Part shown: in pieces, positions 628 through 29,768 of the stretch
Layout: each line of letters begins with the position of its first letter
How positions within the stretch are numbered: the first letter of the stretch is position 1
NCBI GenBank assembly: GCA_018985225.1
Contig: JADGIF010000040.1
Coordinates: 1 to 29,768 of the forward strand
DNA: 29,768 bases
From: Amoeboradix gromovi X-113
Taxonomy: Eukaryota > Fungi > Sanchytriomycota
Direction: 5' to 3'
The notes under the pieces: model-generated
Databases searched by the model: none
The model's input: only the letters and a program-made list of their open reading frames with translations
What the model was told of the DNA's origin: nothing
Translations under genes and position numbers: made by a program

Positions 628-1125
628 TTCCTCGTTAAAAGTCCAGATTTTCGAGAAATCGAGAGTTTCCACGGAGAAACTAGCGGTGCTAGTAAATCCA
701 TTACAGTAATTGCTCATGCTTTCACCACCTTGAGGCGGGATTGAATTAGTATGTATATTCTTGATGTATACTCCTTGCTGCCATACTCTCTGATGTTGCA
801 CATGTAGCAAGACCAATCATATACAAATTATTAAATAAACGGTTTACAGGTCTATTTATCGTTGATCTCTTTTTACGATGGGTTAAAATACATCTAATTG
901 TTCCATGTTTGGATCAGCTCCTCAACTTTGATGAATGTATACTACAACTATTAGCTATTCTTTAGATTTGACGCATTCAGGATGACATCCATTAATTCCA
1001 TTTACCATTTGTGAAAAGGAAGATATCTAGTATTTAAACTATTGGAAAAGTCATGCAATTATACAAAAATACATGCAAATTCTCGATATATGATTTATTT
1101 TACAAAATTCAATGGCTGTTGCAAT
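628..1125 (-). mobile_element. Family I (IS607-like TnpA + Fanzor2/TnpB) internally deleted copy I1
   Basis: Right end TTTTAACGAGGAA; conserved block 628-742; frameshifted MAAR remnant; HTH-like remnant IHSSKLRS*SKHGTIRCIL; colinear with 20645-21134 over the whole length. Left boundary approximate. Confidence 0.85.
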
Positions 1126-1157
1126 AAATCTTACATATAATCAAGGGGTTTAGGAGT

Positions 1158-2891
1158 ATGACCCAACGCACAAGTTCATTTGACCGCAATAATGCAGATT
1201 TCTTCAATTACTATAAGTTGCAACAGATGATGAGCGACGATGATCTTTTCCAGATGTTTGAAGTTATGAGAGAACACCTGCCCATATCATTTAGATTAGT
1301 CAAGTATCACTTAGAGTGGACTAAGCATAAGATTGAATTTTCACCGCTGCCATTTCTTGATACTGCTTATCAGACCCCTTACAATAGGAAGGAATTTCGA
1401 GAATCCGAGATTTTTAATTTCATCACTTGTGAGACTCAAAAAGGCGGTGTTTGGCGTGCGGAAACTGTTAGTATGATTCCTCCTGTGTTATTAAATGTAC
1501 AGGAACATGATGTTGTACTAGACATGTGTGCTGCCCCTGGTAGCAAAACTAGTCAGTTAGCAGAAGGCCTAAATGGTACAGGATTGCTGATTGCAAACGA
1601 TGCTAATAAAAAAAGAGCCAGCATGCTTATACATCAGCTGAAGGTTATTAGTCCTAGTAACATGATATTCACATCGCACCCAGGCCAACAGTTTCCTGTT
1701 ATATACAAAAATGAAAATAATTCAATTGTTCCTATATTTTATGATAAGATATTATGCGATGTGCCTTGTTCTGGTGATGGTACTGCTCGTAAGAATGTTA
1801 ATATATGGCGTACTTGGTCAATTAAAGACGGACTAGGGTTGCACAATTTACAGTGTTCTATAGCAATGAAGGCAGTGCAACAGTTGAAAGTAGGCGGAAG
1901 AATGGTTTACAGCACTTGCTCTTTGAATCCTATTGAAAATGAGGCAGTTGTGTTGAAATTGTTAAAAGCAAATAAAAATTTGAAAATTGTACCTGGTCGT
2001 CATCTAATGAAAACTTTTAAAACCCGTCCAGGTCTTACTCATTGGGTATATCCAGAGGGACTAAGAGATGAGAAGGACAATGAGAAAATAAATGGCTTAC
2101 TGCCTGGGATGGATATATTAGAGTATGGTTTGCATGAATGTTTAAGGATATATCCACACGACAACAACACAGGAGCATTCTTTGTCTGCCTATTAGAAAA
2201 GACAGCCGATTCAGACTTTATCCCTCAGACTAGAACTATAAAAGAGCATGCTAAGCGGTACAACTTGGATGTTAAGGAATCAGGGCTGTTTCGTGATTAC
2301 ATAAATAGAGCTGACAAATTTAAAGCGTACTTTATGCAGCAGGGTTCGCAAGCAGACTTAAGATGCAGGGAAATGTTTCCATTTATGAAATATTGCAACA
2401 AACAGATTTTAGCAGTTGAGAGTGGTGGTCGCAATCGAGGATTCTTTTACATGACGGAGTTGTGCTATAATGTGGTAATGCATACTGTTCCATTGCATAT
2501 CGTAAATGCAGGATGCAAGTTCATGAGCGGTTTGCGTGGTGCAGTTCGGTTATGCGAAACTGACGATATGGCGCTGAAAGAAGCTCCAAGATTTCACGAT
2601 GAGTCTTTGAGAGATGTTATATCTCTACTGAAAGAGTACAGAAATCAGTTTATCATCAGTGTTGATCATCACTCATTAATTAATTTGATGAAGGGTAACA
2701 CGCACTATAGAGATTTAACAGCATCATTTGTAGATGTGGTGTCCAACTTGTCCTCTAGCGCATTTATATTAGAGTACCAGGGTATTCATGTGATGTATTT
2801 TGCAGCTTATAGATCGAAAGTATCGATAATACTTTTGCAGGACAAGGAGGATTTGAAATCAACTTTTGAAAGGCTGGGTGTTGCGGAATGA
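1158..2891 (+). CDS. NCL1: tRNA (cytosine-C5) methyltransferase Trm4/Ncl1/NSUN2
   Basis: RsmB/NOL1/NSUN motifs VLDMCAAPGSKT, ANDA, DKILCDVPCSGDGT, VYSTCSLNPIENE and RIYPHDNNTGAFF; ETVSMIPP and TCSLNP are typical of the NSUN2 subfamily. Confidence 0.92.
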   Translation: MTQRTSSFDRNNADFFNYYKLQQMMSDDDLFQMFEVMREHLPISFRLVKYHLEWTKHKIEFSPLPFLDTAYQTPYNRKEFRESEIFNFITCETQKGGVWRAETVSMIPPVLLNVQEHDVVLDMCAAPGSKTSQLAEGLNGTGLLIANDANKKRASMLIHQLKVISPSNMIFTSHPGQQFPVIYKNENNSIVPIFYDKILCDVPCSGDGTARKNVNIWRTWSIKDGLGLHNLQCSIAMKAVQQLKVGGRMVYSTCSLNPIENEAVVLKLLKANKNLKIVPGRHLMKTFKTRPGLTHWVYPEGLRDEKDNEKINGLLPGMDILEYGLHECLRIYPHDNNTGAFFVCLLEKTADSDFIPQTRTIKEHAKRYNLDVKESGLFRDYINRADKFKAYFMQQGSQADLRCREMFPFMKYCNKQILAVESGGRNRGFFYMTELCYNVVMHTVPLHIVNAGCKFMSGLRGAVRLCETDDMALKEAPRFHDESLRDVISLLKEYRNQFIISVDHHSLINLMKGNTHYRDLTASFVDVVSNLSSSAFILEYQGIHVMYFAAYRSKVSIILLQDKEDLKSTFERLGVAE

Positions 2892-2931
2892 ATAAACATT
2901 TATTAAATTAAATAATCGCTTACTTAGACGC

Positions 2932-3909
2932 CTACTGAACATGCTCTAATTGCAGCAGAAGTTCCTTATCAACCTTATTCTTCGAATATACGTTAAATCT
3001 GGCGTATTTAGTGATTTGATACCCGTTCTGCACTAGAGTGTAGTTTGAAAGACAGTAATGAGTGCCTAGAATGAATGAGTAGTGCTTGATTTTTAAATTT
3101 AATCCGCTGGCAAACAGATCGAGATTAAACGATGGACACGGAACCTTAACCAACACAAATGGAACGGAAAGAAAGCACCAGGGCAGGGAGTGCTGTTCGT
3201 TATGTATAAATGATATTTCTACTTGGTTTAGCAGCTTGGGTAAGATTGTGCATTTTAAAATATCATTCATTGATATTTGCAAAGAATTAAGATGAGGAAA
3301 TCCATGAGATATGTCGTTTATATTCTGTGACTCATACTCGCATATTTTAAGTTGTTTAATGAATGGATAGTGAATGTTACGCAGATCAAATTCATTTGAG
3401 TATAACACAGTCAAGCTAGTTAAGGTAGGGATGTTATTGGGGAAAGAGACAGACAAGTCGTATATGCTTAGAGCACTTAAACAATGATGTGAGATTTCAC
3501 TCAGAATGTGCTTGTATGAATGAAACTGGTCGTTTAATGCTGCTAAGATTTTGTAAACGCAATTGAAATCAAACTCAAGGGATATTGAATAATCGTCATT
3601 CTCATTCATGTTGTTTAGAACATAGATGTCAAATATCTTGCAGTTAGATAACGATTTGAAACGGCTTAATTCATAATGATTGTATTTGCGATGTAGAAAC
3701 ACTCCAAAGCGAATAATCCATTTCTCATATGCAAATACTGATCTTCTAGTTGTGTGTTTAAATATTGGGATAATGCAATTCTTTTGATAATAAATATGCG
3801 CATATTTTGGTTTCAAATACTTCATGGTGTATTTCTTATTTATTAAAAACATACTTGATGAATTAAAGCTCAGGATGATATCAATAATCTCATCCGGCAG
3901 TATTGGCAT
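2932..3909 (-). CDS. Putative F-box-like protein with degenerate leucine-rich C-terminus
   Basis: 325-aa ORF; N-terminal LPDEIIDIILSF resembles an F-box start; LRR-like segments IPTLTSLTV, FIKQLKI and FPHLNSLQI. Confidence 0.55.
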   Translation of the reverse strand: MPILPDEIIDIILSFNSSSMFLINKKYTMKYLKPKYAHIYYQKNCIIPIFKHTTRRSVFAYEKWIIRFGVFLHRKYNHYELSRFKSLSNCKIFDIYVLNNMNENDDYSISLEFDFNCVYKILAALNDQFHSYKHILSEISHHCLSALSIYDLSVSFPNNIPTLTSLTVLYSNEFDLRNIHYPFIKQLKICEYESQNINDISHGFPHLNSLQISMNDILKCTILPKLLNQVEISFIHNEQHSLPWCFLSVPFVLVKVPCPSFNLDLFASGLNLKIKHYSFILGTHYCLSNYTLVQNGYQITKYARFNVYSKNKVDKELLLQLEHVQ

Positions 3910-4050
3910 GGTATAATCTAAACATGGTGTAGCGTCTATTTATAGTAAATTATAGACCTGATAGGTCCGATGACATACATGTGGTACACCTAATCAATTT
4001 TTCAAACAAATATCTGAAATAGAACTAGTCGATTCGAAATGCTACACACT

Positions 4051-4500
4051 CTATAATCTATGTTGTGGGCGCCAACTCGCTGTTATGGACTCCTCCTGGC
4101 TAGCCAAGAATTTCAGAATTGCTACGTAGACTTTTTTGCTATGAGGACATTTGTACCAAGTATCTATGTAAAACACATCACTGCAGCTACACTGACGTAA
4201 CATTGAACCTCTATGTGACAGTGGAACGCTCTTGTGCATTTGAGCATTCATGAAATATGAAGCAATCTCTAAAAGTCGCAGACCAAGGAATAAGCAAAAT
4301 CTGCGTCTATCAATTAACTACCTGTACCTTGTTTGGTATATTGCAACGGCCCTTTCTGTTGTGCTATTAAGTGCGACCACAATAGTAAACTTTTTTTGTC
4401 ATGTCTTTCTCGATAAGTATTTCATATCCTTAGCCAAGGATTTTCAATAGGACGGGTTGTCTATATGTCAAATCTGCCTTTGTTGTGTTTTGCAGGTTTA
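4051..4500 (-). pseudogene. Possible decayed Mutator-like (MULE) transposase fragment with SWIM zinc finger
   Basis: CSCSDVFYIDTWYKCPH fits SWIM CxC-xn-CxH; upstream in another frame RFDI*TTRPIENPWLRI resembles the MULE TTNxxE motif; several stops and frameshifts. Confidence 0.35.
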
Positions 4501-4652
4501 GAGTGAGTGGAAGGCTCTGATTAGACTTACATACTGTATTTTGGATGGATTTTGGGCATCTTGTTATTCAAGAATTCTTTTACTAGCGATCTGCTTTTAT
4601 TCTCAGCCTAATTTTCCTTGAGACTGTCCCACTTCTTTCAAGGTTTCACTTA

Positions 4653-6396
4653 ATGCAATCAAATAGTTCAACTTCACCATTAAGCCCTACAGTAGATGCA
4701 CTAACTGAAGTATCAACAAAGTCAATGAAGAGGTTTTCTTCTCAATTAAATCTAACATCTCCGAATGAAGTTCAAACTAAACAAGGACTTAATAAAATAG
4801 ATCAAGAATTTTTAAAATCCGAATTCGTGATTGAATATCTAGACGTCAACCAGGTTTTTACATGCTCTTATAACGATTCTGCGAACACCGGTCGTATAGT
4901 TGTTACTCCAAAAATTCTTGGTTACATGGGCAACGATCTAAACTCAATAACTAAAATTAGCATCCAGCTACATGACATAATAAACATCGAAAAGCGAAAT
5001 ACCTCTAGTGTATTCCCTAATGCTATACGCATCTATACCACTCAGAATCACTATACTTTTGTATCTTTTCTAAAAAGAAATGCTGCTTTTAAACTGATTT
5101 TATCTTGTTGGGAGAACGCTTGCCTAGAACATGCAAGTTCTCGCAATGAGAACATCATACATATAGCCAATTTATCTGCTGACCATGACGCACATAGGGC
5201 CATAAGTGCTTCTGCGGATTTCCCCTCAGCAATAGATCAAAACGAGTCAAACACAAACGTTAGCACAAGTAGCGAGTTTATTGATCCAGTAGCAGTTGAA
5301 AGTGGCACTATGCAAAGTAAGCTGCTGGGATTTGACAACAATCAGTCTTTAGATCAACTAGAGAGCCAACAGCCAATCATTAAGAAAGAACCATCAGAGC
5401 AGGATGTATATGTTGACCCTGTTCCTTCCGCCAACAGCGACCCTTTAACATCTGCTAATGATCAAGTTAAGGCATTTTGGTCCAACATGGGAAAAAGCTT
5501 AATATCTATCCAGGCTCAAATAACTGAAAAAACTAAACCTAAAGCAAGAGCACCTAGTAGTAACTCCTTGTCTTCAACATTGGCAGCTACAACCAATAAA
5601 CTTTTAGATCCCTTGATGTCGCTTTCAGAGCCTCAATCCACCAGTGCCACAGTAAAACCACCTCCGCTGCCTCCAAGTTTAAAATCCTTAACAACTCCAT
5701 TACGCCCAATTCTTGTCCAGTCAATTAAACTAAAATGCAAATATGTTTATCGTTTTTTATTTGAAAGCCCTTTGCTTCAGAGAACTTTACAGCAGCAAGG
5801 TGCAACGGATTTAGAAATAACGCACTGGTATGATGCCAATTATAGTAATAACGGTACAACTGTAAGACGCAATGCTAGAACTATCAGTTATAAGATAAGT
5901 AGGCCCTCTGATATGTACAAATACACCGATGTTCACTATTTGATAAATTCAGATGAAGGACAAATGTATCGAATACTTATTTAGGTATGTTATAGAGGTG
6001 CACAGTAGTGGAGTATCTACATCTAGTAATCAGGGACCCAACTATACAATAATTCATAGAATAGAGATAACACAGGATCCCAGAGCAACAAACATCCAGG
6101 TTAGCATTCGGATAGACTATAAGAAATCGGTATTTCAAGAGAGCAAGGTAGATAAACGCGCTAGCGATAGAATCAAAAAGTTTTACTTAGACGAGATTAA
6201 TCAAATACGCAAAGGAATGCTTAAAAGAAAGAACAAACCCAAATCTGTAGCAGAAACTACTAGCGGATTAAAAGATTTTTTAAGAATGTTTATTAGTAGT
6301 TTGAATGCTGATGAGGTAGTATTAGGATTATTGATCGTAACAATACTCTTCAACATATTATTGATTATCCAATTTGTACTGAGAGCATTAGGATAG
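4653..6396 (+). CDS. GRAM-domain / VASt-like ER-anchored sterol transfer protein (Lam/Ltc/Aster family); join(4653..5965,5985..6396)
   Basis: GRAM motifs (FTCSY...GRIVVT, IEKRNTSSVFPNAIRI, YTFVSFLKRNAAFKLI..W), VASt-like segment (DLEITHW...RTISY) and a C-terminal TM helix; a 19-nt GT-AG intron joins the two ORFs in frame (EGQM|YVIEV). Confidence 0.8.
5966..5984 (+). other. 19-nt spliceosomal intron GTATCGAATACTTATTTAG
   Basis: GT..AG ends; removal joins ORF 4653-5984 to the frame of ORF 5953-6396. Confidence 0.8.
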
Positions 6397-6574
6397 TTGA
6401 ACTTAATAAATAATGTTATGCATATTCCAACGAAAACTTATATTCCCGTTCCTTATTAAAGTGATATCCTACATCTCATGTTGGCAAAAGCTATGTGCTT
6501 CATTACAATTTCTGTTATTTGAAGATTTAGCAAGAAACAGCATCACCAAGTTGCATTCGATGGTGTATTAACTG

Positions 6575-6867: not shown

Positions 6868-7315
6868 CTCCTCGTTAAAATTCCTGATTTCCGAGAAAAT
6901 CGAGAATTTCCAGAGAGAAACTAGCATTAGTTTCTCCGGTACAGTGATCGCTCACGCTTTCACTACCCTGAGGCGGGATTGAATAAGGATGCATCTACTT
7001 GATGTATATGTTCCTTGCTGCCATATGATCTCTATCTATCTTCAAATAACAGCTGGTACAAGTGTATGTTTCTCAGTTGGTTTTCTTTAGAGTGCCACGT
7101 ATTGTACATGGCATCGAATTTCCGTGTTTCGACCAGCTTATTAGTCTGAGACGAATGTATGCTGTACCTGTTAATTATTTATTTAGAATTGATTTACCAT
7201 TTGTGAAAAGGAAGAATATCGAGTATTTGAGCTATTAGAAAAATCTTGAAATTATACAAAAATGCATACAAATTCGCGAAAAATGATTTATTCAAGAAAA
7301 TAGTCAAGTTGTAAC
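6868..7315 (-). mobile_element. Family I copy I2 (IS607-like/Fanzor2 remnant)
   Basis: Minus strand reads SMPCTIRGTLKKTN*ETYTCTSCYLKIDRDHMAARNIYIK (Zn ribbon + RuvC-III), fused to HTH remnant YSIHSS..ISWSKHG; right end TTTTAACGAGGAG. Confidence 0.9.
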
Positions 7316-8053
7316 AAAAATATGTGTCTGTTCGTCAAGAATGTGCGTGCCACTGCCTTTATTCTACACGTTTAGACAGCATTTTATTGGTCACCTAGAA
7401 ATTCTTGAATCTTCTTGATGTATCAGCAAAATCGTCAAGAAACCCCACCTGATTTTTGCTTTCGCAAATATTGATAGGGAAATCCTGAGCATCTCTTTAC
7501 GGAATTTCGGTAAGGAAAGCGTATGAAGAAGGATGTACAATGACATTTTCCAGCCGCACCTGGGAATCTTAAAGGTTCCGATTGAGATACTGATACTGTA
7601 GTACTTAATGAGAAACCGGTGGCAAGATTGGTAAAAGCAAAGTACCTTTGCCGATTCCTTATTTTAAAACATCAAAAGCTTATCAGCAATTATTGTAAAT
7701 TACAAGTATAGTAGCATTCAGCAGTCTCAAAGAGGTCCAAAGTTGAGCCACTACGCTCACTTGGTGCAGTTTGGGATAGAGCTTTTAATGCGTGTTGCAA
7801 GTATCTTAAAATAATAGAAGATCTATCGAGCAACGTTGCAAGTCCCGATTGGCAAAGAAGAGGAAATTTAGAGTTTTGCCTGGACATGGATTATGATTAG
7901 TTACGGGACATATCTGCGCTAATTAGATCCACTGTTTTGAAACTTTTGTTTGAAAAAGTGTGTTTAGTTTTTGTAGAATGTGTACCATGTGCAAAAGTAG
8001 AATGCATGCATTATGGCAGTCATGGTCGAGTAATTATGCTCCTTGAAAATAAA

Positions 8054-9067
8054 ATGCTGTCCATATACATCCCAATAGTATCTACTTTGTATTACGCACT
8101 AGGATTGGTTTTATATTTGTATAATTTCAAACATGTGGTGATATCAAGAAGATTGCCATATCTTTTGATAGTTGATCAAATATTAAATTACAGCTCAATA
8201 TTGATGCTATTCTGTGAGTCTCCATGTATTCTGTATCATCTAGCTGGTATACTTTCAGCTACAATTACAATTGTAAGGATGACATACATTTATCAGTTTA
8301 TTGGACACGACCACAAATGGTTGCAGATTATTAATAGAATGCTCTGGACTGCTGATTATAGGTTAAAGACAGGCTCTATGTTGATACTTCTATCCCTGTC
8401 CATGGCAGTTAGCTTGGTAACAACTGTTGCATATTCTGCAATAGTTGGAAACTTTAAGTCTACTTGCTCTTTGTATCCATATCCTATTATGTTTATTCAA
8501 ATGTATGCGTTGGTGCTTATCCAAGTGGTTTATATCACAAGCATTACCGCTGCAAAGTTGGGTGATAAAATTGGAATGAAATTGGAAATTGCTGGCAGGT
8601 GCTTTACATATGTAGCTTTTTCTGTTTTGTTTCTGCTAGTTACTACTTTACTGGACCAAATACCTTTCGAATATTACGGCATAACTCAAAAGCTGAATTT
8701 TATATTCTGGGGTACTTGGTTTCCGTGTATTTACATTTACATTGTTGACTCGAGATTTAAGATTATTAGACTTTCTGGTAGTGATTACAATGTAGCTAAT
8801 TTAGAGGAAATGGGGAAAGCTTACTATTGCAGTGAAAACATTCATTTTCTAGCAAAATACAGCGAGTATCTTAACAACGATAGAGATAACAGACTGTTGG
8901 AGGGTCTGCTAAATGATTTTGTGGAGTTGAATTCCAAATTCCAGTTGAATCTAAACCAGGAAATACGAAACAAAGTACTTTCAAAGCCAAAGTACATAGA
9001 GTTGGTATACGACGAGGTAGTAGAAATGGTGAGTCACAACTTGCTACCTTTTATAATAGAATTGTGA
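8054..9067 (+). CDS. Multi-pass membrane protein with C-terminal RGS domain (7TM-RGS), paralog 1
   Basis: About 6-7 hydrophobic segments, then RGS motifs YCSENIHFL and DFVELNSKFQLNLNQEIR; ATG 8054 chosen by alignment with the paralog. Confidence 0.8.
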   Translation: MLSIYIPIVSTLYYALGLVLYLYNFKHVVISRRLPYLLIVDQILNYSSILMLFCESPCILYHLAGILSATITIVRMTYIYQFIGHDHKWLQIINRMLWTADYRLKTGSMLILLSLSMAVSLVTTVAYSAIVGNFKSTCSLYPYPIMFIQMYALVLIQVVYITSITAAKLGDKIGMKLEIAGRCFTYVAFSVLFLLVTTLLDQIPFEYYGITQKLNFIFWGTWFPCIYIYIVDSRFKIIRLSGSDYNVANLEEMGKAYYCSENIHFLAKYSEYLNNDRDNRLLEGLLNDFVELNSKFQLNLNQEIRNKVLSKPKYIELVYDEVVEMVSHNLLPFIIEL

Positions 9068-10590
9068 ATTTATAAATAAATACGTTTGATGTTCAGTGTT
9101 TACGAGAGTAGGACACAAAATGTATTACATAGACTATCTTTAAATTTTGGTTTTGGAAGTAACCGAATTGCTATTAGAATGAGTAGTTCAATTGTAAATA
9201 GAGTATTAAGCCTGTCTAATTAGATTGAATAAAAATCAAGATCCATTAAGACCATCGAGACCTCTGCACATTATCAACAAGAGTGAATTGTAGAAGAGCA
9301 ATAAGGAAGACATTTGACTTGTTCGATATTCAAAACCCATCAAAAAAGTGCCCAAAACTGCATCATTAAATCTCATCAGATTGCTGCACTACGCTAATGT
9401 GCTAATGTCATCATTGATACCAGAAGCCTAGCAAAGGTCATAAACTCAGTCAACTAAACAGTTCCAAGGCTGAACATCGGAAAGTTATTGGCTCCGAATA
9501 GGAAATATGACCAAAGAGAAAGGCAGTGATTCAATATGTGGATGCAACTAATGAGCACAATCTAACAGATGCTCAAATAATCTGCAACAGGTAACTGATC
9601 GCTACATTGGAGGATAACACTGAATGCTTTTATTAGAGTGATGACTAACATAGTAGCACCCACACTCAAAGAACCTTAGATTTGTGCCAGTACAAACTTA
9701 GTCGTACAATCGTGGATAGCAACGTGAAAGCATTTTGCAACCACCTTCAATTCGTAGAACGTTAGTGGGGATACATAGGAAGACTTGTTAGCAACTAAGA
9801 TGAATGACTGACTACGATGACTTATTGCTTTAAGCTTGGCTCCTATGATATGCGACATTTTTTTTATTTTTTTACATTTTGAGGTACTTGTCTAGCAATT
9901 CTGTCTATTTTTTGTAGATTGCGGCTTGAATGTGCTACGTTGCAATAGTCATATTTCTTCAAAGCAATAAATTTATTATGTTTACGAATGTTGTTCCAAA
10001 TTTTAAGAGGCCGGTTTTATAGTGCATGTCTCAAGTATTGGTCGCGCTCTGGTTACTTTGAAGGTCTCTTGATACTATTAAAGTTGGTTTTCCTCAAAGA
10101 ATCTGCACACTTGCGAATTCCAATAAACATTGGATTCCTTTAGGCAGCACAGAACAGATGGTCTCTTGATCTATGCGGCTACTTACATCTCTTTATAATG
10201 CATTCTTAACTGTTTAAGCACGGAAGTTGTGTCTTGTGATCTGTCACTTAAAACTTTTAATCGTATACGAATGACTTTTGACGTAATTTTTTTAAGTTGG
10301 AAAACTGCTACTCTGAGTCCATTGACAGAATCCGTAGCAAATTTACATTAGTTACGCTGTAACAGATTTCTTTTTTTAATCTTCATGTGGTTTTGAGTCT
10401 CTTATAATTTATCATACCAGCCATTTTAACACGGCGTTACTGAAATACCGCAGATTAATTAAATTATGAGTTAAGTAAACGTTTTAAATGAATTATTACC
10501 TTGATGATCACGACGCTCATTACATGTGTTTTGGACATCTGGTCAAACTCTGCATATTGGTCATTCCATCAATCTTGCCCCTTGGGAACA

Positions 10591-11601
10591 ATGCTGCCGA
10601 TATGGGTGTTAGTGGCGTTTTCAGCTTACTTTTGGATAGGATATTCGATAATGGTATTAAATATTAAGAGCATAGTAATATCTAGTAGAATGCCATACCT
10701 GCTATTTACTGAGCAATTTTGTATTTTTTTGATAGTTTTGTTGTTAACATTCAAAACACCATGCCTAATCGAAGTAGCTCTTATTCTTATATGCTTTACA
10801 TCTACCCTGATACGGACATCTTATGTTTACGAGTATTTATCGGATGGAACTGGAATTGTCTCAAAATTAAATAAACTGATATGGAACAAAGATCATCGTA
10901 TCAAGAAACCTCACACTTGCATGTTTGCGTTTATAGTTGTGGGAATCTCACTAATACTTGGTCTTGTTTATGCAATTAGAAATGATAAACTATTCTCAAC
11001 TTGCGAGGGGTATCCGTGGTATGCTGGTTCATTAGCATTGGTACTCTTATGGCTCTTTGATCTACTATATGTGACATTCATTTGCATTCGGGGATTAAAG
11101 GATAAGATCGGTATGAAGGTGGAGATATTCGGGAGAATGTTTTCCACTGTATGCTATACAATAGGTTCGAATGTTTACAAGGCCAGCCATGAGATAGACA
11201 GTTCATTATCTACATACATAGTATGCATTAATCTGATATTCTGGGGTACCTACGTGCCTTTGATTTTTTTGTTCAGACATTTTTTAAGAACTCGCAATAT
11301 TCACTTGAATGGTTCACAATACAGTTTCCAGCAAATAGACTACATAAGCAGACAGTTCTATTGTAGTGAGAATGTTTTGTTTTTAAAAAGATATGATGAG
11401 TTTATATTGTGTAACGACGAAACTTTATTAAAAAACTTGGTTAGCGATTTTGTAGTAATAGGATCACCTTACCAATTAAATATAAATCAAGACACTAGAG
11501 ATAAAGTAATCAAAGATCCAAGCCAAATGGTCATAATTTATGAACAGGTAGTTCTTTTAATAAATGACAACATACTACCGTATATACAGTTGATGGCCTA
11601 G
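10591..11601 (+). CDS. Multi-pass membrane protein with C-terminal RGS domain (7TM-RGS), paralog 2
   Basis: Shares VISxRxPYLL, DKIGMKxEI, NxIFWGTxxP, YCSENxxFL and QLNxNQxxR with 8054-9067; ATG 10591 inferred. Confidence 0.8.
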   Translation: MLPIWVLVAFSAYFWIGYSIMVLNIKSIVISSRMPYLLFTEQFCIFLIVLLLTFKTPCLIEVALILICFTSTLIRTSYVYEYLSDGTGIVSKLNKLIWNKDHRIKKPHTCMFAFIVVGISLILGLVYAIRNDKLFSTCEGYPWYAGSLALVLLWLFDLLYVTFICIRGLKDKIGMKVEIFGRMFSTVCYTIGSNVYKASHEIDSSLSTYIVCINLIFWGTYVPLIFLFRHFLRTRNIHLNGSQYSFQQIDYISRQFYCSENVLFLKRYDEFILCNDETLLKNLVSDFVVIGSPYQLNINQDTRDKVIKDPSQMVIIYEQVVLLINDNILPYIQLMA

Positions 11602-12844: not shown

Positions 12845-13119
12845 CAAGTGGGACACCAAGTATAAAAACTAGATAAAGTCATTTTAAAGGAAGTGCTCCA
12901 CAAGGAGGAAATACTATTATCAATAAAAGTCCTTCTTTCAAACCAATTTTCTTTCATTAATGTCATTCCCCTCTTTAAAATATTCGAGGTCTCTGAGTGT
13001 CTAAGCAAAAGGTGCAACCAATAAGATTAATTTAATTTACTATCGGTTAATACACACTTGATATAATGATTCAAACTATTTGAGAAAGTTAGCCTAGTTT
13101 ATATTTGATATCCCAAATG
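12845..13119 (-). mobile_element. Family T copy T2 (MITE-like, 275 bp)
   Basis: TIRs CAAGTGGGACACCAAGTATAAAAACTAG and CTAGTTTATATTTGATATCCCAAATG; retains CTFCLDTQRP remnant; left arm matches 25405-25495. Confidence 0.85.
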
Positions 13120-13631
13120 TTTGGATTATGTTTTTTAGTTCCTCAGATCCACACACGTCGGAGCTACAAGATCCGGCTTTCGCAACAGGATAGAAATGTG
13201 CAATACGGCCAAATGAAGTTACTATGAAAAGTAGACTGGGTAAAAATTGATGATAATACCATAAAGTTCCAAGGTTATCCGTTGCACCGACTGTGTTGCA
13301 GTTAGGAACAGAATTTTAAATGCGTATTACAACAGTCTTCAAATTGCAGGAAGTACAACGAGAAATGATATTAGTCCTGAATGGTAGAGAAGTTTGCATG
13401 AAAATGTTGTGAAGCAGAGTATAGATAGTAAAATATGAGGCGCTTCTCGACTTAACTGGCTTTACCATGAGGTATTTGGACAAGAGTTTTGTATCATTTG
13501 TTACAAAGTATGATTTCAGCTTTTTTTGAGCATAGAGTCTACTCACTAACAAGAGATTTGTATTCGGCGGCATCAAAAAATTTATCAGCAACAATATGCG
13601 GAGTAAGTTGTAATATCATATCTTATAAAAT

Positions 13632-16386: not shown

Positions 16387-16530
16387 CCCGTCGTTAAAAA
16401 TCTTCATTTATGAGAAAACCAGTCGCTCTCTTACATTTGTCGCTCACGCTTTCGCTGACTGAGACTGGATTGTAAAGGTGCACATACACTTCAAGTCTAT
16501 GTTCCTTGCTGCCAAATGGTTTCTGTATGC
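16387..16530 (-). mobile_element. Divergent Family I-related copy I3
   Basis: Minus strand reads AYRNHLAARNIDLK, then AATCCAGTCTCAG..AGCGAAAGCGTGAGCGA and end TTTTTAACGACGGG; may extend to ~16680. Confidence 0.65.
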
Positions 16531-16686
16531 TTCCAAAGTATTTAATATTTCTGGTGCTTGAAATCCTTAAACACAGCACGATAAGTCTTTAACTTGGCTT
16601 TCTTTGCCTACTTGATATGACTCGTATTTGAGAGAGAATCTCTTTTGAGAAAATTGAGAAAAGACAAAACATTTTTAAATGTATAA

Positions 16687-17181
16687 CAAATTGGGACACC
16701 AAATATAAAAACTAGACTAACCCGTTTTTAAAGGTGCACCATACGCAGGAAATGCTATCTTTAATAAAAGATCTTCTATTATACCAATTTTCTTTCATTA
16801 ATTTCAATCCCCTCTTCAAAATAAAACTAGAAGACCCTGCATCTCGTTCAAATATATGAGGTCTTTGAGCATCTGAGCAAAAGGTGCATTTTATTAGACG
16901 GTACTCTTTTCTAGAGTCATTTTGTAATGCTATACTAACATCATTACTCTTGTCTATTTCTTTGAAGTGTAATAGTGATATTTTATTTGACATAAAGATT
17001 GGATGAAAGAGTAAGAGAATAGCTTTACAGAATATTTACTTATTTTCCTTTTATACTCGTCAACTCCGCAACTAGCTCAATGTCCACTCGCCTCTTAAAT
17101 CCATAAAATCAATAAAGCTAAAATAATGTTCCAAGTTATTACAGAAAGTTAGTCCCGTTTTTATATTGGATGTCCCAAATG
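16687..17181 (-). mobile_element. Family T copy T3 (495 bp) carrying a Fanzor1-like C-terminal remnant
   Basis: TIRs TGGGACACCAAATATAAAAACTAGACTAAC and GTTAGTCCCGTTTTTATATTGGATGTCCCA. Confidence 0.88.
16712..16993 (-). pseudogene. Fanzor1-like C-terminal fragment
   Basis: YRLIKCTFCSDAQRPHIFERDAGSSSFILKRG resembles the Fanzor1 xxLxCxxC...(W/F)xRDxNAxxNI pattern and sits next to the element's right end. Confidence 0.55.
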
Positions 17182-17399
17182 TTTAGCAATCTCTTTCCTG
17201 GTGTTAATAGATATCCGATAGGTCTTGAGGAATAACCTGTTCTTCATATCTAAGATATTTCTTTAGATTTAACGTATTGAAGATGAGAAGACTCGGATTC
17301 ATTGTCCATTGATGACAAGAAAGTATGACGAATTTTATGCAGTCGCCAAAGTTTAAAAAGAGAGTATATTGAAGAGATATAGCTCATGTTATCACGACA

Positions 17400-17870: not shown

Positions 17871-18852
17871 GTCTTAGAATTTCCTATAAATTATGTCTAC
17901 ACCCATGCCAACTTCAAGTCTTTGATTTAAATGAATTGACCATTTATCGCGATTACATGAATTTTATGATTCTAGTGTTCTTCTATAGTTTTTCATCGAA
18001 AAAGACAGGTTAATCTGTTTTTATCGTTTATAATAAGTATCTCAGCCAGAACATGACAAACTTCAAAGCATCAAAAACTTCTCGAAGTTAAGAAAGAGAT
18101 TCTCTACCATTTACACAATGAGACAATGATGGAATTTAATAAAGCATTTACTAGTCAAACTTACACAAAATTAAACTCTGGAAAAAATCTATTTGGAGAA
18201 TTGAGCATGAAAACTGTTATTTTGAAGTAGATGGAGAATTTGTATTTCAAATGCATGCATACTTGCTCAGTCCCCCTTAGGTTGCAGATATATCAACTGC
18301 TGGTGTAACAGATCGTAAGTTATTGCCAGCTTGTCTCGGAAATTCTTGATTTTCCAGGAAACCAGGACTTTAGCGAGAAGTGATTGGCCTCTTTGTAATT
18401 TTTCAATTTAAAAACTTTGTCTATCCAGACCCCCTCGAAATAAAATGTCGTCAAAACCTTCGAATAAAAAGTTTTATGCGAATCCAGAATTCCAAAATGC
18501 ACCAAATCCAAACGATCTTCCTATTCCTATTCTTCCAGTCACACCAAATAAGAAAGATAAGACTGAAGAGTTAAAAGCGATGCTGAAGTTATAATATCAC
18601 GTTATTCAGAAACTAACTATAATAAATTTATTCTCAACATCATAAGTCACTCAACGTTTCTATCCGTCGTTAAAAATGGTCAACTTGAATTTTTACAAGA
18701 TTTGTCCTTAAATAATCTCATTTGACTGTGTGCCATAGAAATATATAATCTTTCGACCTCTGCAGCAAATTCCTATAATATTACATTGCACATGCCTTAT
18801 ATTAATCACAATTAAGATATGCTCCTTCTAACGTAATAAATTTTGAGTTTGA

Positions 18853-19233: not shown

Positions 19234-19258
19234 AATTTATACTTTTTATTTTTATCAT

Positions 19259-20614: not shown

Positions 20615-20644
20615 TTTAAGGAGAAATAATATTGTTTGCAACTT

Positions 20645-21134
20645 CTCCTCGTTAAAACTCCTGATTTCCGAGAAAATCTAGAATTTCCACAGAGAAACTA
20701 GCAATGCCAGTAAATCCGTTACAGTGATTGCTCACGCTTTCACTACCCTGAGGCGGGATTAATTATGGATATAAATACTTGTTTATATTCCTTGCTGCCA
20801 TATAATCTCTATTTTTGCTCATGTGGTAAGACCAATGACATGAATTACTAAATAAATGGTTTACGGGTTTATTTATCGTTGATCTCCTTTGAGGATGGGT
20901 TGAAAAACATCTAATTGTTCCATGTTTGGGCCAGTTCCTCAACGCTGATGTATGCTGTAACAATTAGTTCTTCTTTAGATTTGACATATTCAGAATGACA
21001 TCCATTGATTCTATTTACCATTTGCGAAATGAAGAATGTCGAGTATCTAAAGTATTTGAAGAGTCATGTAATTATATAAAGATACATAAAGATTCTCAAT
21101 AAATTATTTATTTTGCAAATCCAACTCCTGCAAT
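20645..21134 (-). mobile_element. Family I copy I4
   Basis: Reads MVNRINGCHSEYVKSKE, then after a frameshift HTSALRNWPKHGTIRCFSTHPQRR (IS607 TnpA MerR-like HTH) fused to RDYMAARNI; right end TTTTAACGAGGAG. Confidence 0.9.
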
Positions 21135-22903: not shown

Positions 22904-23213
22904 ATTGCAAAAAATTTCTACAGCTTTGATATTTATTAAATATACCATTTTTCATGAGTATATTACAATTTCTTGATAAAAAGTATTTTCCAGATTTTTC
23001 TAATTGTTCAAGTACTCGATATTCGTCGTTTCCTCAAATGACCAATAGAATCAAGTTTGTAATCCCAAATATGCGAAATCTGAAGAAACAACTAAACGGT
23101 AATCCCGCCTCAGGGTAGTGAAAGCGTGAGCAATCGCTATAGCTTAGCGACTAAAATTGCTGGTTTCTCTGGAGACTCTCGATTTCTCGGATATCAGGAT
23201 TTCCAATGAGGAC
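22904..23213 (+). mobile_element. Family I copy I5 (left end joined directly to scaffold, no RuvC remnant)
   Basis: 22990-23095 matches the left arms of I1/I2/I4; 23101-23213 is the scaffold AATCCCGCCTCAGGGTAGTGAAAGCGTGAGCAATC...AATGAGGAC; left boundary approximate. Confidence 0.8.
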
Positions 23214-23375
23214 TAAAGCCTTTATCTTCAGACGCTTGCTTATTTAGATATTTTGGAATACCATTATGTTTAAAACTTGAAGGGAATCAAGAAAGATGAT
23301 AATCTGTATGGTTCTCGTTTCCTTTTTATAGCGATTTAATTCAAATTTATTTGCGCAAAATGCAGCATATTATAC

Positions 23376-24125: not shown

Positions 24126-24320
24126 TTGTAATTTCAAATATGGGACACTTTATTTGAAAAGCTGCATCACCTGAGTCTAAACCTGCCAATTAAAAGTGAG
24201 AAATATTACATCATTTTAGTCACCAAATACTCCTAGAAATCCGAGTTACACATTCCACTCATGAAAATCAATCAGCAAAAAGAACTCGTAAAAATGAGCT
24301 CATTAAAAAAGAAAGAGAAT

Positions 24321-24857
24321 TTATTGGTTGCCATTAGGTTTTTTAAAACCAGGTAGCATGTCTTTGATAGAGGTGTAATCCATTGGTGTTCTCGCCACGT
24401 ATGTTATCCTCCCATCCTTTTCTGCTCTTGGCTCAAACGCGTAATCTAACAGACTCATATACTTTTCCTTCTGTTCCTCAGTCATTCTAATGTCCGGGAT
24501 AGCATCATGTATTTCCTGTTGTTCAGTAGCCATGCCAACTGGTTGGACACTTTTTTTACTATTTCCTCCGAATACTTCTTTAAACTCTCTATTTACAGAT
24601 GCCTCGGTTAAAAAGGGACTGCTATTATCTTCTTGGAGTTGAACACTTGTACTTAAAATTTTGTGTAAATTAGGATTAATAGGTACTTCCGGATCCTCAG
24701 CGCTTGGAACTCTTTTGCTCTCTACGTCGAAAAGCGGCTTTTGGAAGTTGTAATTGCCGTAAAGTGGATGTACACTTTTAAAACCAATTGCAGATGTTAC
24801 TGTAGGCAGATTCCATGGGACTGGAATGGCGCTAATAAAAGACCATAAAAGTAACAT
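24321..24857 (-). CDS. Hypothetical, probably secreted protein
   Basis: 178 aa; signal-like start MLLLWSFISAIPV. Confidence 0.6.
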   Translation of the reverse strand: MLLLWSFISAIPVPWNLPTVTSAIGFKSVHPLYGNYNFQKPLFDVESKRVPSAEDPEVPINPNLHKILSTSVQLQEDNSSPFLTEASVNREFKEVFGGNSKKSVQPVGMATEQQEIHDAIPDIRMTEEQKEKYMSLLDYAFEPRAEKDGRITYVARTPMDYTSIKDMLPGFKKPNGNQ

Positions 24858-25404
24858 TTTTAGCTTTTGAAGTATTTCTCTTTTAATAGTTCACCTGACA
24901 CCAGAATTTCAGCATTGCCAATCATATCGATTGCGAATTACGTAACTTGATCAGGCAGTCCCCAATCAGGTGTAGTGATCTAAGATAAGTGCGATTCGGG
25001 GATTTATAAAAGAAGTTCATCGAGTAAACATCATTACTTCTGAGCTGCTCTGACGTAGTTGCAATTTGAAAAGTAATTAACGAGAATCTCCTTGCTGACT
25101 ACACAATCCATAGCGAAACACATGTTTAAAGATCAAACCTCAGAATTCCTAGTTGAGATAGACCTGCCGCTCTGGATTGATAACACATTAGTTTTCCAAA
25201 CTAATCGTGACCCACACGATGCGTTTACGTATTCAGACTGCTCACATTTAGAAGCTTTGGTGGAAAACACCAAAAAATCACTTCCTGCAGCTGAGAACAA
25301 CAAGCATTTCGATAAACTAGCACAATTAAGATTGATATCAGCTAGCAATATGTGCAGTAAATGCTGCAAAGTCTTAAAATTAAGTTTTAATATTCCAGTT
25401 TCTA

Positions 25405-25771
25405 CAGATGGGACATCAAATATAAAAACTAGACCAACTTTCTGAGACAGTTTGAATCATTATTTCAAGTGTGTATTAAGCAGTAGTAAATTAAATCACA
25501 TTAATCTGAGTGGTTCAAGTAAATTATTTTAGTAAAGAAGCTTTTCATCCATCAAAATCTTAGAAACAGTGATTAATAAGAAGAGAAAACAAAAAATAAG
25601 TTATACGAAGAAAAAGAAAATGGAACAGATAAGACACTCAAAGACCTTATTTGAAAGAGGTGAATAACATTAATGAAAGAAGTACTTTTATTAATAATAG
25701 TATTTCCTCCTTATGGAGCACCTCCTTTAAAAACGGCTTGGTCTAGTTTTTATACTTTGGTGTCCCATTTA
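25405..25771 (+). mobile_element. Family T copy T4 (367 bp) with TA on both sides
   Basis: TA|CAGATGGGACATCAAATATAAAAACTAGACCAA ... TTGGTCTAGTTTTTATACTTTGGTGTCCCATTTA|TA. Confidence 0.88.
25700..25771 (+). ncRNA. Candidate Family T omegaRNA scaffold
   Basis: Conserved in all 4 T copies; hairpins CTCC-N4-GGAG and TAAAAAC-N11-GTTTTTA; CACC complementary to the subterminal GGTG. Expression not shown. Confidence 0.4.
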
Positions 25772-25797
25772 TATACCGCGCAATTTATCTCTCCGTG

Positions 25798-26565
25798 ATG
25801 CAGAAAATTAAAATTGCAGTCGGTCAAATTTGTAGCAAAGCAAAAGTAACCAAAAATTTACAGGTTATCAACAGTCTTGTCAGGCAGGCATCTGAGGAAG
25901 ACTGCAAAATGATATTTCTACCAGAGAGTAGTGATTTTATGGAACAGTTATATGATGAATACAAAGACGCGTCAAAGGAGATACAGCAAATGGCCCAGGA
26001 AAATAATATTTGGATGAGTATTGGAATACACTCATTGACTTACAACATAACCAAATACAGAAATCGACAGCTGATAATAAACAATAGAGGCATTGTTGTT
26101 GATTATTATGACAAAGTGCACTTGTTTGAGCTACTTAAGGAAGGCGACAGATTCGAGGCTGGGGATCTACTTAAAGTAGTCGACAGTCCTCTAGGACCCA
26201 TAGGATTAGGAATATGCTACGACTTACGCTTTCCAGAGTTTAGTTGGAAATTAAGAGAAATGGGTGCCAATGTATTAACGTATCCAAGTGCATTTACGGT
26301 GGAAACTGGGATTCATTTTGAACCACTAGTGGTGGCTAGAGCAATAGAGACTCAGTGCTATGTAGTGGCGGCTTGTCAATATGGAAGACATACCGAGAAA
26401 AGAAGTACATTTGGAAATAGCTTAATAGTAGATCCGTACGGTAAGATATTGGCAAAAGGAACCAAAGAGCCTGAATTATTAACAGCTGAAATAGATTTGG
26501 ACTATTTAAATGAAGTAAGATACAAAATGCCTGTTCTTAACCATAAAAGACGTGACTTATACTAA
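25798..26565 (+). CDS. Nitrilase-family amidase (Nit1-type deaminated glutathione amidase)
   Basis: Catalytic triad contexts IFLPE, YDKVHLF and [10 protein letters not shown]; also YPSAFT and [13 protein letters not shown]. Confidence 0.9.
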
Positions 26566-26575
26566 GCCACCACGA

Positions 26576-28293
26576 ATGGGACTCTTTAAAATATTTAAAA
26601 ATAATAAATCATCTACCACTGATATTACTGAAGATTTTAAGTCGCCAAAAGCTGTCAAAGACGAGGAGCTCCCAGCAGCTGTTACTAAGACCGCGAACTC
26701 CACTGGAAAATCAGAAAGCTTGGGTATATTTGGATGCAGGGTATTAGAAGCTAAGAATTTGTACATTCCTCCAGGAGTGCTAGATAAAATAGCATTAGAT
26801 CAAAGAGATAAAAAATTAAAACTTGGAAATATGGAGTTTGTATACTATAACCCGTATGTTGTTATACAATATGATAAGAATGAAATAACAATGTACTCTA
26901 GCAGTGGCAAAATGGATGCGCCTAATTGGAAAGCAAAAGTAGCATTCGATTTTACGAGAGAAGCAGAACTTATATTGAATGTTTACCAGAAGACTGTTGA
27001 CGAGGAACAAGATCGTAAATTGTTTGAAGCGATAGAACAGCAGGCGGCAAAGGGTAGAGACAGAAAGAAGTCCGTTCAGCTCGTTGAAAAACATTTTGAA
27101 CAACAGGATATTCTAATTGGATCTGTAATTATTCCAATTCCTACTGTGTATGAAAAAACAGTTGATTTGTGGTTAGCTATACATCCTCCTGTTCCATTGC
27201 CTGCAGGAAGATCGCCTGGACAAATACATTTACAACTAAGCTTGACAAAACCACAAGACAAACCAATAACAATGGAAGACTTTGAACTAATGAAGGTAAT
27301 AGGTAAAGGAAGCTTTGGTAAGGTAATGCAAGTGAAAAAGAAAGATACCGGTCGAGTGTATGCCATGAAAATTATCAAAAAGTCTCATATTGTTGAAACA
27401 GATGAAGTCGAGCACACGTTAGCAGAAAGACAGGTCCTAGCTAAGATAAATAACCCATTTATTGTTTCGCTGAAATTTTCATTTCAATCCCCTGAGAAGT
27501 TATACTTTTGCCTTGATTTTGTGAACGGCGGTGAGTTATTTCACCATCTGCAGAACGAAGGTCGGTTTGGAGAGGTCCGATCCAAGTTTTATGCTGCTGA
27601 ACTTGTACTAGCTTTGGAATGTCTACACAAGTTTAATATAATTTGTATTTTCAAAATAATTTAGATCGCGATCTTAAACCAGAGAACATATTGCTGGACG
27701 GAACAGGGCATATTGCATTATGCGACTTTGGACTTTGTAAAATTAATGTATCAGGGCAGGAAAAAACGTCCACTTTTTGCGGAACCCCAGAATATTTAGC
27801 ACCAGAAGTCCTACAAGGAAAAGGATATACTAAAGCGATAGACTGGTGGACGTTGGGCATATTGTTGTACGAGATGATAACTGGTTTACCCCCATTTTAT
27901 GATGAAAATGTGCAAACAATGTACAAAAAGATCATGTTGGATCAACTTGTTTTTCCAAGTTATATGTCACCGTTATCAGTTCAAATACTACAGGGCATAA
28001 TTGAGAGAGATCCTTTAAAGAGATTTAATGAGCAACAAATAAAGAACCATGAGTTCTTTAAAGAAATTGATTTCGCAAAACTTTACAAGAAGCAGATAAT
28101 TCCTCCATTTAAACCTAGAATACAAGCTGCTGGAGACACTAGCAATTTCGATGAGGTATTTACTAATGAACTACCTAAAGATTCTTACGAGGAAGCCAGG
28201 TTATCTGACTCAATACAGAAACAATTTGTTGGATTTACTTTTGTTCCTGGAAGCGAACTTCAAACATACACGCAAAAATCGCAACTGCAGTAA
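26576..28293 (+). CDS. YPK1: AGC kinase Ypk1/Gad8 with C2-like domain; join(26576..27644,27665..28293)
   Basis: [31 protein letters not shown] after splicing, [21 protein letters not shown] and hydrophobic motif FVGFTF. Confidence 0.9.
27645..27664 (+). other. 20-nt spliceosomal intron GTATTTTCAAAATAATTTAG
   Basis: Removal restores the kinase catalytic loop IIYRDLKPEN exactly. Confidence 0.93.
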
Positions 28294-28354
28294 ATAAATG
28301 AGTTAACAGCAATTTGATTAGATCAATTTTGCCTTTTTCTTGAAATTAATTTTG

Positions 28355-28729
28355 ATGCAGTTCTCCTCTGAAAGTGAAGATGATATGCAAGCAGTTGTTG
28401 GAACCACTATATTTAGAAAAGAAGTGAACATTGAAAAAGAACTAAAAGCAGCGCAGGTTCCAAAACCAATCCTAAGCAAAGCAGTAGCTCCAAAAGAGCA
28501 GCGTGCCCATTACTTGATTGAAGCTGCAAACAGGAGGGCGCAAGATAAAGCCCACATAATGGCTGATCAGTTGAGCAAAACCAGAGAAGATGATACACCG
28601 GTGCAACTTTACAGAAAACCCGAACCGGCTCCCGTTACGAAGAAACGCAACACAAGTACCAGGGATGAAGCAATACAATCATACAAGGCGAGGTCCAAGA
28701 AGCGACAGAAGCTTCAAGATGTCTTGTGA
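28355..28729 (+). CDS. Small charged protein, weakly reminiscent of NSRP1/CCDC55
   Basis: MQFSSESEDD start; LIEAANRR and AIQSYKAR segments; identity uncertain. Confidence 0.45.
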   Translation: MQFSSESEDDMQAVVGTTIFRKEVNIEKELKAAQVPKPILSKAVAPKEQRAHYLIEAANRRAQDKAHIMADQLSKTREDDTPVQLYRKPEPAPVTKKRNTSTRDEAIQSYKARSKKRQKLQDVL

Positions 28730-28955
28730 TTATTATGAAATATGGCTTAAAAAGTTAGTGTCATTTTAACATAATTTCTGCTCTTTTTAACCTATGCTAA
28801 TCCATGGCTAGGAATAGTTAGGCTCTAGTATCTTTAACTTGTTCTTTCATGAAATGACATAATAAATGCTATTCATTTATACAAGTTTGCTATTACGTAG
28901 GAGTTGTGAAGAAACTCAATTTATAGTTTATAATACTTAGTGTCCTCCCCCAAAC

Positions 28956-29396
28956 ATGTCTGTCAAAAGAATTCAAGTGGAATTAAAGAATTTAATGGAG
29001 AACCCAATAAAAGGAGTACATATCATACCTAATGAAGATGACGTTCTATCATGGATTGTAAAGATAACAGGACCTGCGGGCACCCCGTATGAAAAAGGCA
29101 CGTTTTCAATCAATATAGTTTTTACTTCGGATTTCCCGTTTAAACCACCTAAAATATTATTTAAAACGAAGATATATCATCCTAATTTTGATAGTGATGG
29201 CAATATTTGCCTAAGTTTGTTAAATAATTGGAAACCTGCCTCCAGAATAAGTGTACTAATCACTGCTATTTTACAGCTGCTGTTAGAACCAAATCTCGAG
29301 GACCCGATAGCAACCGAGCCAGCGGAGCTCTACAGAACTAACAAAGATGAGTTTATTAAGAATGCCAAAGATTTTACCAAAAAATACGCGAAATAG
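28956..29396 (+). CDS. Ubiquitin-conjugating enzyme E2, Ubc4/5-like
   Basis: GPAGTPYEKGTF, FPFKPPK, FKTKIYHPN, GNICL (active-site Cys) and WKPA. Confidence 0.92.
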   Translation: MSVKRIQVELKNLMENPIKGVHIIPNEDDVLSWIVKITGPAGTPYEKGTFSINIVFTSDFPFKPPKILFKTKIYHPNFDSDGNICLSLLNNWKPASRISVLITAILQLLLEPNLEDPIATEPAELYRTNKDEFIKNAKDFTKKYAK

Positions 29397-29415
29397 TAAA
29401 TCTGTTTATTATCAT

Positions 29416-29530
29416 CTCCTCGTTAAAAGTCCTAATTTCCGAGAAAATCGAGAAGTTCCACAGAGAAACTAGCAATGCTAGATCTCCGTTACAGTGATTG
29501 CTCACGCTTTCACTACCCTGAGGCGGGATT
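29416..29530 (-). ncRNA. Candidate Family I omegaRNA (reRNA) scaffold; equivalents at 628-742, 6868-6980, 16387-16471, 20645-20760 and 23101-23213
   Basis: Lies between RuvC-III and the element end; best-conserved part of all copies; several hairpins; loop CCTC is complementary to the terminal GAGG. Confidence 0.6.
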
Positions 29531-29680
29531 GAATAAGGATGCAGATACTTGATGTATATGTTCCTTGCAGCCATATGATCTCTATCTATTTCCAAATGAC
29601 ATTTTGTACAGGTTCAGGTTTCTAAATTAGTTTTCTTTAAAGTACCATACCTCGTACATGGCATCGAATTTGTTCCTTGG
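29416..29680 (-). mobile_element. Family I copy I6
   Basis: Minus strand reads NSMPCTRYGTLKKTNLET*TCTKCHLEIDRDHMAARNIYIKY, then the scaffold and right end TTTTAACGAGGAG. Confidence 0.9.
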
Positions 29681-29732
29681 TGCCATGTGGCCCATGTCCA
29701 CTTCGAAATGACACTATGTACATGAATAGCTC

Positions 29733-29768
29733 TCCAAATTGGTTTTCTTTAGAGTGCCACATATTGTA
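29733..29768 (-). mobile_element. Second Family I Zn-ribbon fragment running off the window
   Basis: Reads TICGTLKKTNL and matches 7076-7107. Confidence 0.7.

Follow-up and report, generated by a model that had tools for sequence, protein, structure and literature searches.

Here, we describe a family of non-autonomous IS607/Fanzor2 transposons in the genome of Amoeboradix gromovi X-113, as seen first in a 29,768-nucleotide stretch of DNA (contig JADGIF010000040.1, positions 1 to 29,768; hereafter the window) and then across the assembly. The evidence makes it likely that these elements spread by insertion through an AG dinucleotide core, that each inserted copy has decayed neutrally since, and that the family is now dormant or dead. 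A. gromovi is a sanchytrid fungus that parasitizes algae, and its DNA was sequenced after whole-genome amplification (PMC8371127); the assembly comprises 10.55 Mb in 1,319 contigs with 36% GC. A preliminary description of the window had reported six related elements, and all six were recovered by self-BLAST and alignment, with pairwise identities of 75-88% and E values down to 1e-128; a seventh, older remnant (I7) was added. The elements and their parts are listed here.

I1: 628-1115, minus strand; complete non-autonomous IS607/Fanzor2 copy of 488 bp, of a subtype with a TnpA head and without zinc finger; left flank ending in ACAG, right end GAGGAA.
I2: 6868-7308, minus strand; complete, 441 bp, scaffold pseudoknot intact; left flank ending in ACAA, right end GAGGAG.
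I2 Fanzor2 remnant: 6998-7108, minus strand; zinc finger and RuvC-III (DRDHMAARNI) with an in-frame stop.
I3: 16387-16555 (end at about 16555), minus strand; old and badly decayed, with a RuvC-III trace; right end internally deleted and ending in GACGGG, left end past recognition.
I4: 20645-21127, minus strand; complete, 483 bp; left flank ending in GCAG.
I4 TnpA remnant: 20900-21021, minus strand; broken 5' end of an IS607 TnpA with MerR-like helix-turn-helix, its motif matching the TnpA of the element at G000:C542.
I4 omegaRNA-like scaffold: 20645-20757, minus strand; 3-bp hairpin, three more hairpins and terminal AG core; predicted pseudoknot in which the hairpin loop CCTC can pair with the terminal GAGG.
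I4 guide position: 20625-20644, minus strand; flanking host DNA.
I5: 22924-23213, plus strand; short and diverged, 290 bp, left end fused straight to right end without Fanzor remnant; left flank ending in ACAG, right end GAGGAC.
I6: 29416-29768, minus strand; cut by the contig end, scaffold pseudoknot intact.
I6 Fanzor2 remnant: 29548-29658; zinc finger and RuvC-III, with a stop.
I6 tandem duplicate of the zinc-finger segment: 29668-29768.
I7: about 18121-18380, plus strand; Fanzor trace and right-end hairpin.

Ordinary eukaryotic genes were found across the window, and the elements sit in intergenic positions. The preliminary description had the elements ending abruptly at TTTTAACGAGGAG; this sequence was exact only in I2, I4 and I6, and the ends of I1, I5 and I3 differed as listed. 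It had also merged the coding remnants into one Fanzor2 peptide, of which the zinc finger was confirmed in I2 and I6 alone; the RuvC-III tail stood by itself in I1 and I4, as a trace in I3, and nothing of it was found in I5. The leading residues SMP of that peptide belong to the TnpA helix-turn-helix at the deletion junction and not to Fanzor. No Rfam match was obtained in the window.

Searching the genome with a 25-nt right-end pattern, allowing up to 3 mismatches, gave 503 matches, while the reversed control pattern gave 0. This filter was passed by 4 of the 7 copies in the window and by 5 of 27 chance neighbours in the fetched loci, so recognisable remnants should number roughly 900-2,700; the earlier estimate of about one copy per 5 kb is fair if such relics are counted. 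A search for PF07282 returned 560 candidates genome-wide, all 150 of those scored exceeded the cut-off, and one longer copy reached 72.8 bits (cut-off, 26.3). Together with the TnpA head, these matches bear out the assignment to IS607/Fanzor2. The nearest relative of I4 was only 92-93% identical to it. Complete copies measured 440-620 bp genome-wide and shared one layout: a left end, the first codons of an IS607 TnpA with its helix-turn-helix, a deletion, a variable 3' part of Fanzor2 and a right end of about 113 nt. Two decayed long copies continued from the helix-turn-helix into the start of the resolvase.

Copy analyses were based on 91 loci picked by similarity, a sample that favours well-preserved copies. 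In end logos of 62-66 copies, information fell from 1-2 bits to about 0.1 bit at both boundaries. The left junction read (W)R-CAG/CT (the slash marks the boundary) and the right end read ACGAGGAG, followed by random sequence. The same copies had no terminal inverted repeats, the dinucleotide AG matched at both ends, and their junctions ruled out a target duplication. Furthermore, two insertions nested in older copies (L023 and L008) allowed the empty site to be restored with a single AG and with nothing lost or duplicated, the targets being rebuilt as CAG directly joined to the next base. An AG common to both junctions is what insertion by a serine recombinase via a dinucleotide core should leave. 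A role as introns was rejected, as the elements end in CT...AG on both strands and not in GT...AG. Judged from these junctions, the AG core predicts a CAG target-adjacent motif (TAM) for the nuclease of the family; the IS607 systems in the literature consulted have a GG core and GGG or TGGG as TAM (bioRxiv 10.1101/2023.11.20.567912, 10.1101/2023.08.09.552727; PMC11832414). A filled site shows GAG and not CAG before the guide and so would be spared, by the same self-protection logic as in ISXfa1.

By analogy with other IS607 elements, a full-length copy would have provided in trans a TnpA serine recombinase that excised the elements as circles, and these would have recombined into CAG sites through the AG core. 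In the era of a cognate Fanzor2, a transcript crossing the right end would have become an omegaRNA made of the scaffold and about 15-20 nt of flank; this RNA would have directed cutting at CAG plus flank, that is, at the donor site left empty by excision, and repair from the filled sister would have restored the copy. The scaffold was constrained in lineages that spread, but each inserted copy now decays neutrally. Both the IS607 mechanism and the role of the nuclease in retention have been described (bioRxiv 10.1101/2023.11.20.567912, 10.1101/2023.08.09.552727).

For the consensus right end, the predicted fold has four hairpins, one of them with a 3-bp stem and a loop of 6 nt; this loop could pair with the four bases preceding the terminal AG. 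The loop and the 3' end would pair as CCTC with GAGG in the family, as GCTT with AAGC in the C542 element, and as CCTA with TAGG and CTTAC with GTAAG in L093 and L097, two metagenomic Fanzor2 loci that have the same pairing in different letters. A matching pseudoknot is known from the omegaRNAs of IS607 TnpB and ApmFz2 (10.1101/2023.08.09.552727, PMC11832414). Across the copies 92% of cells were paired, compared with 37-45% when the structure was slid, the structure itself having been derived from the consensus. On these grounds we predict for the right end a fold of the Fanzor2 omegaRNA type, including a pseudoknot whose pairs covary between families, and the preliminary description placed the guide position correctly in the flanking DNA; its six guides are the correct 20 nt beyond each right end. 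It could be argued that this end was kept solely as DNA for TnpA binding and recombination, as in a miniature inverted-repeat transposable element acting only in cis, and that the RNA fold is incidental. IS607 TnpA requires only about 40-60 bp per end (bioRxiv 10.1101/2023.11.20.567912), conservation is highest over the last 45 nt, and the folding z-scores are modest. We nevertheless regard this as very improbable: a conserved block of about 113 nt is present even in the shortest copy, I5, and starts exactly at the pseudoknot hairpin, the pairs covary across families, and shared variants keep the pairing.

The variants of the scaffold and of the coding remnant were then divided into shared and private ones, a shared scaffold variant being one present in four or more copies; the scaffold was assessed by consensus fold and pair counts in place of RNAalifold. 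Shared variants numbered 22 in 78 stem columns and 18 in 36 other columns, and 10 of them kept the pairing, compared with 4.1 expected. Rare variants numbered 88 and 38 in the same two sets of columns, and 15 kept the pairing, compared with 15.0 expected; in a further count, rare changes were about as dense in stems (0.031 per site) as in loops (0.028). Likewise, in the Fanzor remnants of 34 copies, singletons gave a ratio of nonsynonymous to synonymous polymorphism (pN/pS) of about 1.0-1.2, whereas the ratio was 0.12-0.18 in variants shared between copies (Fisher p=1e-4). Constraint on shared variants and neutrality of private ones indicate that selection acted on the lineages that spread and not on copies after insertion. 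Selection maintaining the scaffolds of the ghost copies was not found, as rare changes break pairs at the neutral rate. A selected mini-protein of 125-145 aa from the longer ghosts was also rejected, since singletons are neutral and stops are common, one of them being common to 6 copies.

These results bear on the proposal in the preliminary description that the elements form a genome-wide guide library for a nuclease supplied in trans. Such a library would be domesticated, the host keeping hundreds of cassettes of scaffold and guide to direct a Fanzor against viruses, other transposons or genes of the host itself. The very high density, with its 503 well-preserved ends, would suit such a library, as would the facts that all guides differ and that some overlap gene leaders: an MFS-transporter-like gene has its ATG 27 nt downstream of the right end of I4, which makes the I4 'guide' the leader of that gene. 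Yet the guides differ because each is the flank of an insertion site, which is automatic for any such transposon; there is no acquisition step, a guide being whatever DNA adjoined a CAG, and the base composition past the right end is random. Moreover, the private mutations show no selection on scaffold or coding remnant, only 6 of 67 well-preserved ends keep every predicted pair, no cognate nuclease was found, and a search of the genome for CAG followed by the I4 or the I2 guide gave no match beyond each guide's own filled site. The library proposal therefore finds no support here, and we give it hardly any credence; a guide repertoire used in trans has already been published for Fanzor1 ghosts (PMC10432273).

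We also looked for an intact TnpA and Fanzor2 master, as the preliminary description had proposed. The RuvC-I region of the family occurred at only six places in the genome. Two of these, the long copies L063 and L074, carry stops and frameshifts, although the DPG of RuvC-I, the shifted glutamate of RuvC-II, the C4 zinc finger and the RD of RuvC-III can all be read in them. At the other places the protein search found no long open frame through the nuclease domain, C46 being an open N-terminal half cut by the contig end. Two long TnpA copies of the family were broken, and no full-length family protein was present among the predicted proteins. Neither an intact Fanzor2 nor an intact TnpA of the family was thus found in this fragmented assembly, where C46, C477, C977 and C565 are long copies and several of them are cut by contig ends. 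Relatives of the family protein were absent from the metagenomes searched, and in the protein collection A. gromovi alone, among those checked, had them. With its cognate helper genes broken or missing in the assembly, the family is probably dormant or dead. In another, distant element at G000:C459:10329-11916, the TnpA frame is open and the Fanzor is interrupted by a single stop.

The sole uninterrupted Fanzor2 found belongs to a sister element, listed here.

C542 sister element: L061:1477-3612 (G000:C542), minus strand; single-copy IS607 element of 2.1 kb, its left boundary inferred from one copy.

Its Fanzor2 (P0001) has 546 aa from the first Met after the overlap with TnpA, carries all catalytic motifs and gave mimivirus ApmFz2 as its best PDB match (9B0L, E 7e-16); its reading frame spans the entire right end and terminates immediately beyond it. 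The overlapping TnpA scored 62 bits with PF00239 and has one stop in the helix-turn-helix. The junctions of the element resemble those of the family, with ACAG/CT on the left and GAG at the right end. Its Fanzor2 was 48% identical over 183 aa to the family protein, which for this comparison was L074 read through, with X at stops and at one frameshift and with the other frameshift joined without spacer. The C542 scaffold has about 62 nt, compared with about 113 nt in the family, and a different sequence, and no ghost copies derive from the element. The C542 protein might be able to load RNAs of the family.

The copies themselves look mosaic. Among 59 copies we counted 36 combinations of markers, which comprised two indels and the types of left end, right end and internal deletion; the indel markers occurred in all four pairings, and 69% of distant informative site pairs were incompatible with one tree. 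A distance-decay test like the pairwise homoplasy index was significant only for near-adjacent sites; with pairs within 3 nt excluded, no signal was seen at 4-20 nt (p=0.85). Since the distance decay is not robust, recurrent mutation is possible for single-base markers, and the mosaicism rests on the indels and the general incompatibility. These data suggest exchange between copies, and template switching in break repair could produce it.

Mosaicism and the C542 protein are among the arguments for a selfish system that is still alive, in which a cognate Fanzor2 left out of the assembly, or that of C542, loads ghost omegaRNAs and cuts empty donor sites, and template-switching repair among hundreds of copies makes mosaics. 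In its favour, 28 of the 67 well-preserved ends keep hairpin, pseudoknot and terminal AG, the C542 Fanzor2 is uninterrupted and ApmFz2-like with its three catalytic residues and has ACAG/CT...GAG junctions in common with the family, and ghost omegaRNAs function with SpuFz1 (PMC10432273). We still consider a live system unlikely, given the divergence of the C542 protein, its short scaffold, its single-copy state and the stop in its TnpA, together with the absence of selection on individual scaffolds, the 92-93% identity of the nearest relative of I4, a search of source-run contigs that gave no empty allele, and a recombination test significant for near-adjacent sites alone. In a bolder version, a Fanzor2 with a CAG TAM, either a hidden cognate or that of C542, still receives omegaRNAs from the thousand or so IS607 ghosts of this compact genome, and cycles of cutting and repair at empty sites shuffle sequence between them. 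This seems to us rather improbable; if true, it would provide an example from nature of eukaryotic transposon homing that is guided by RNA and makes the copies mosaic.

Several observations weigh against our interpretation of AG-core spread followed by neutral decay. No excision product, circle or empty allele was seen, the material covered being contigs from the source run; these support the assembled I4 sequence at single-copy depth and contain no joint that skips I7, I4 or I5, although such contigs drop rare variants. Many of the 1,319 contigs, which were assembled from amplified DNA, end inside these repeats, and an intact helper may thus have been missed. The scaffold fold alone was only modestly better than shuffles (z -1.3 to -2.7), and RNAalifold on 67 right ends gave no consensus structure, because scattered private mutations defeat the method.

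Further observations were made on related sequences. L063:1314-2650 (G000:C385) contains a long family remnant that abuts, head-to-head, a TnpA/Fanzor fragment from a different IS607 family; the fragment is inverted and richer in GC, and the junction is either a real rearrangement or an amplification chimera. At least 10 further IS607-type resolvase matches (C459, C690, C373, C578, C689, C787, C420, C392 and C46) indicate that several IS607/Fanzor2 families have invaded the A. gromovi genome. Among the closest outside Fanzor2 relatives was L092 (ENA ERZ6863480), which adjoins a family B DNA polymerase gene, a neighbour that suggests a large DNA virus; other close outside matches came from brown algae, at about 37% identity. 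The Fanzor2 tree was a quick version with long branches and weak support, and no donor is claimed from it. L002:1620-2039 and L004 (G000:C1201, C817) are contigs that overlap via one copy with identical flank and about 10 differences within the element; these may be allelic variants, in-place conversion or misassembly. In EukProt EP00835, dozens of predicted A. gromovi 'proteins' of 100-165 aa (P0121-P0163) are frames of ghost elements and not host genes. Finally, the window contains another repeat family, whose terminal inverted repeats begin with GGGACAC, at 1-152, 12846-13122, 16689-17184 and 25408-25770. It has a C4 motif and an 'ERDAG' tail resembling Fanzor1 RuvC-III, and its end has 1,567 genome matches, or about 780 elements. 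From its size and its Fanzor1-like tail, two Fanzor-derived ghost families may share the A. gromovi genome.

Among the host genes of the window, 7937-9067 and 10501-11601 hold a paralogous pair of multi-pass membrane proteins whose C-terminal part, judged by eye, is RGS-like. The frames of a GRAM-like gene and of an AGC kinase gene overlap by about 20-30 nt at 5953-5990 and 27643-27664, which suggests very short introns.

No published link of IS607/Fanzor2 to Sanchytriomycota was found in the literature searched, and neither this host group nor such a scale, nor an AG core with a CAG target, appears to have been reported. These results extend IS607/Fanzor2 to Sanchytriomycota and show that an insertion sequence of bacterial type has multiplied in A. 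gromovi to at least 500 copies, which make up about 2.5% or more of a reduced 10.5-Mb genome. From the many natural insertion sites, an AG core and a CAG TAM can be predicted, unlike those of the GG/GGG systems in the literature consulted, and the 546-aa C542 Fanzor2, whose scaffold measures about 62 nt, is a candidate for a compact nuclease. In addition, the split between shared and private variants provides a simple test of whether ghost loci are maintained, by which those of A. gromovi are not, and the ghost frames in EukProt inflate the predicted proteome of the species.

The closest IS607-Fanzor2 elements are ISvMimi/ApmFz2 of Acanthamoeba polyphaga mimivirus, ACa-1/2 and ISvNY2A (PMC3627910, PMC10530073, PMC11832414). 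Like these, the A. gromovi family combines a serine-recombinase TnpA overlapping Fanzor2 with the DPG of RuvC-I, a shifted catalytic glutamate, a C4 zinc finger and the RD of RuvC-III; it lacks terminal inverted repeats and target-site duplications, and has a right-end omegaRNA pseudoknot, here predicted. Mimivirus has three copies, whereas the nuclear genome of the fungus A. gromovi contains from hundreds to thousands of copies with internal deletions; their core is AG and their predicted TAM is CAG in place of GGG, the scaffold is shorter, at about 113 nt, and no intact cognate was found. The family also resembles the Spu-1 ghosts of Spizellomyces punctatus Fanzor1, nuclease-less elements that keep their ends and omegaRNA scaffold in many copies; these are about 550 nt long and number 134 copies, a guide repertoire in trans has been proposed for them, and ghost RNAs have been functionally tested (PMC10432273). 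Spu-1 is a Fanzor1 element with inverted repeats and 19 full-length genes in its genome, whereas the A. gromovi elements are of Fanzor2/IS607 type without inverted repeats, at least 8 times denser per Mb, with no intact partner found and a predicted omegaRNA scaffold. Compared with the bacterial IS607 TnpB elements ISXfa1 and CboIStron (10.1101/2023.08.09.552727, 10.1101/2023.11.20.567912), the A. gromovi family has an AG core in place of GG, no group I intron and a eukaryotic host. It would share with them recombination through a dinucleotide core, a TAM that equals the insertion motif, a right end that differs from the TAM, so that the filled site is left uncut, and retention driven by the nuclease, which in ISXfa1 and CboIStron is TnpB.

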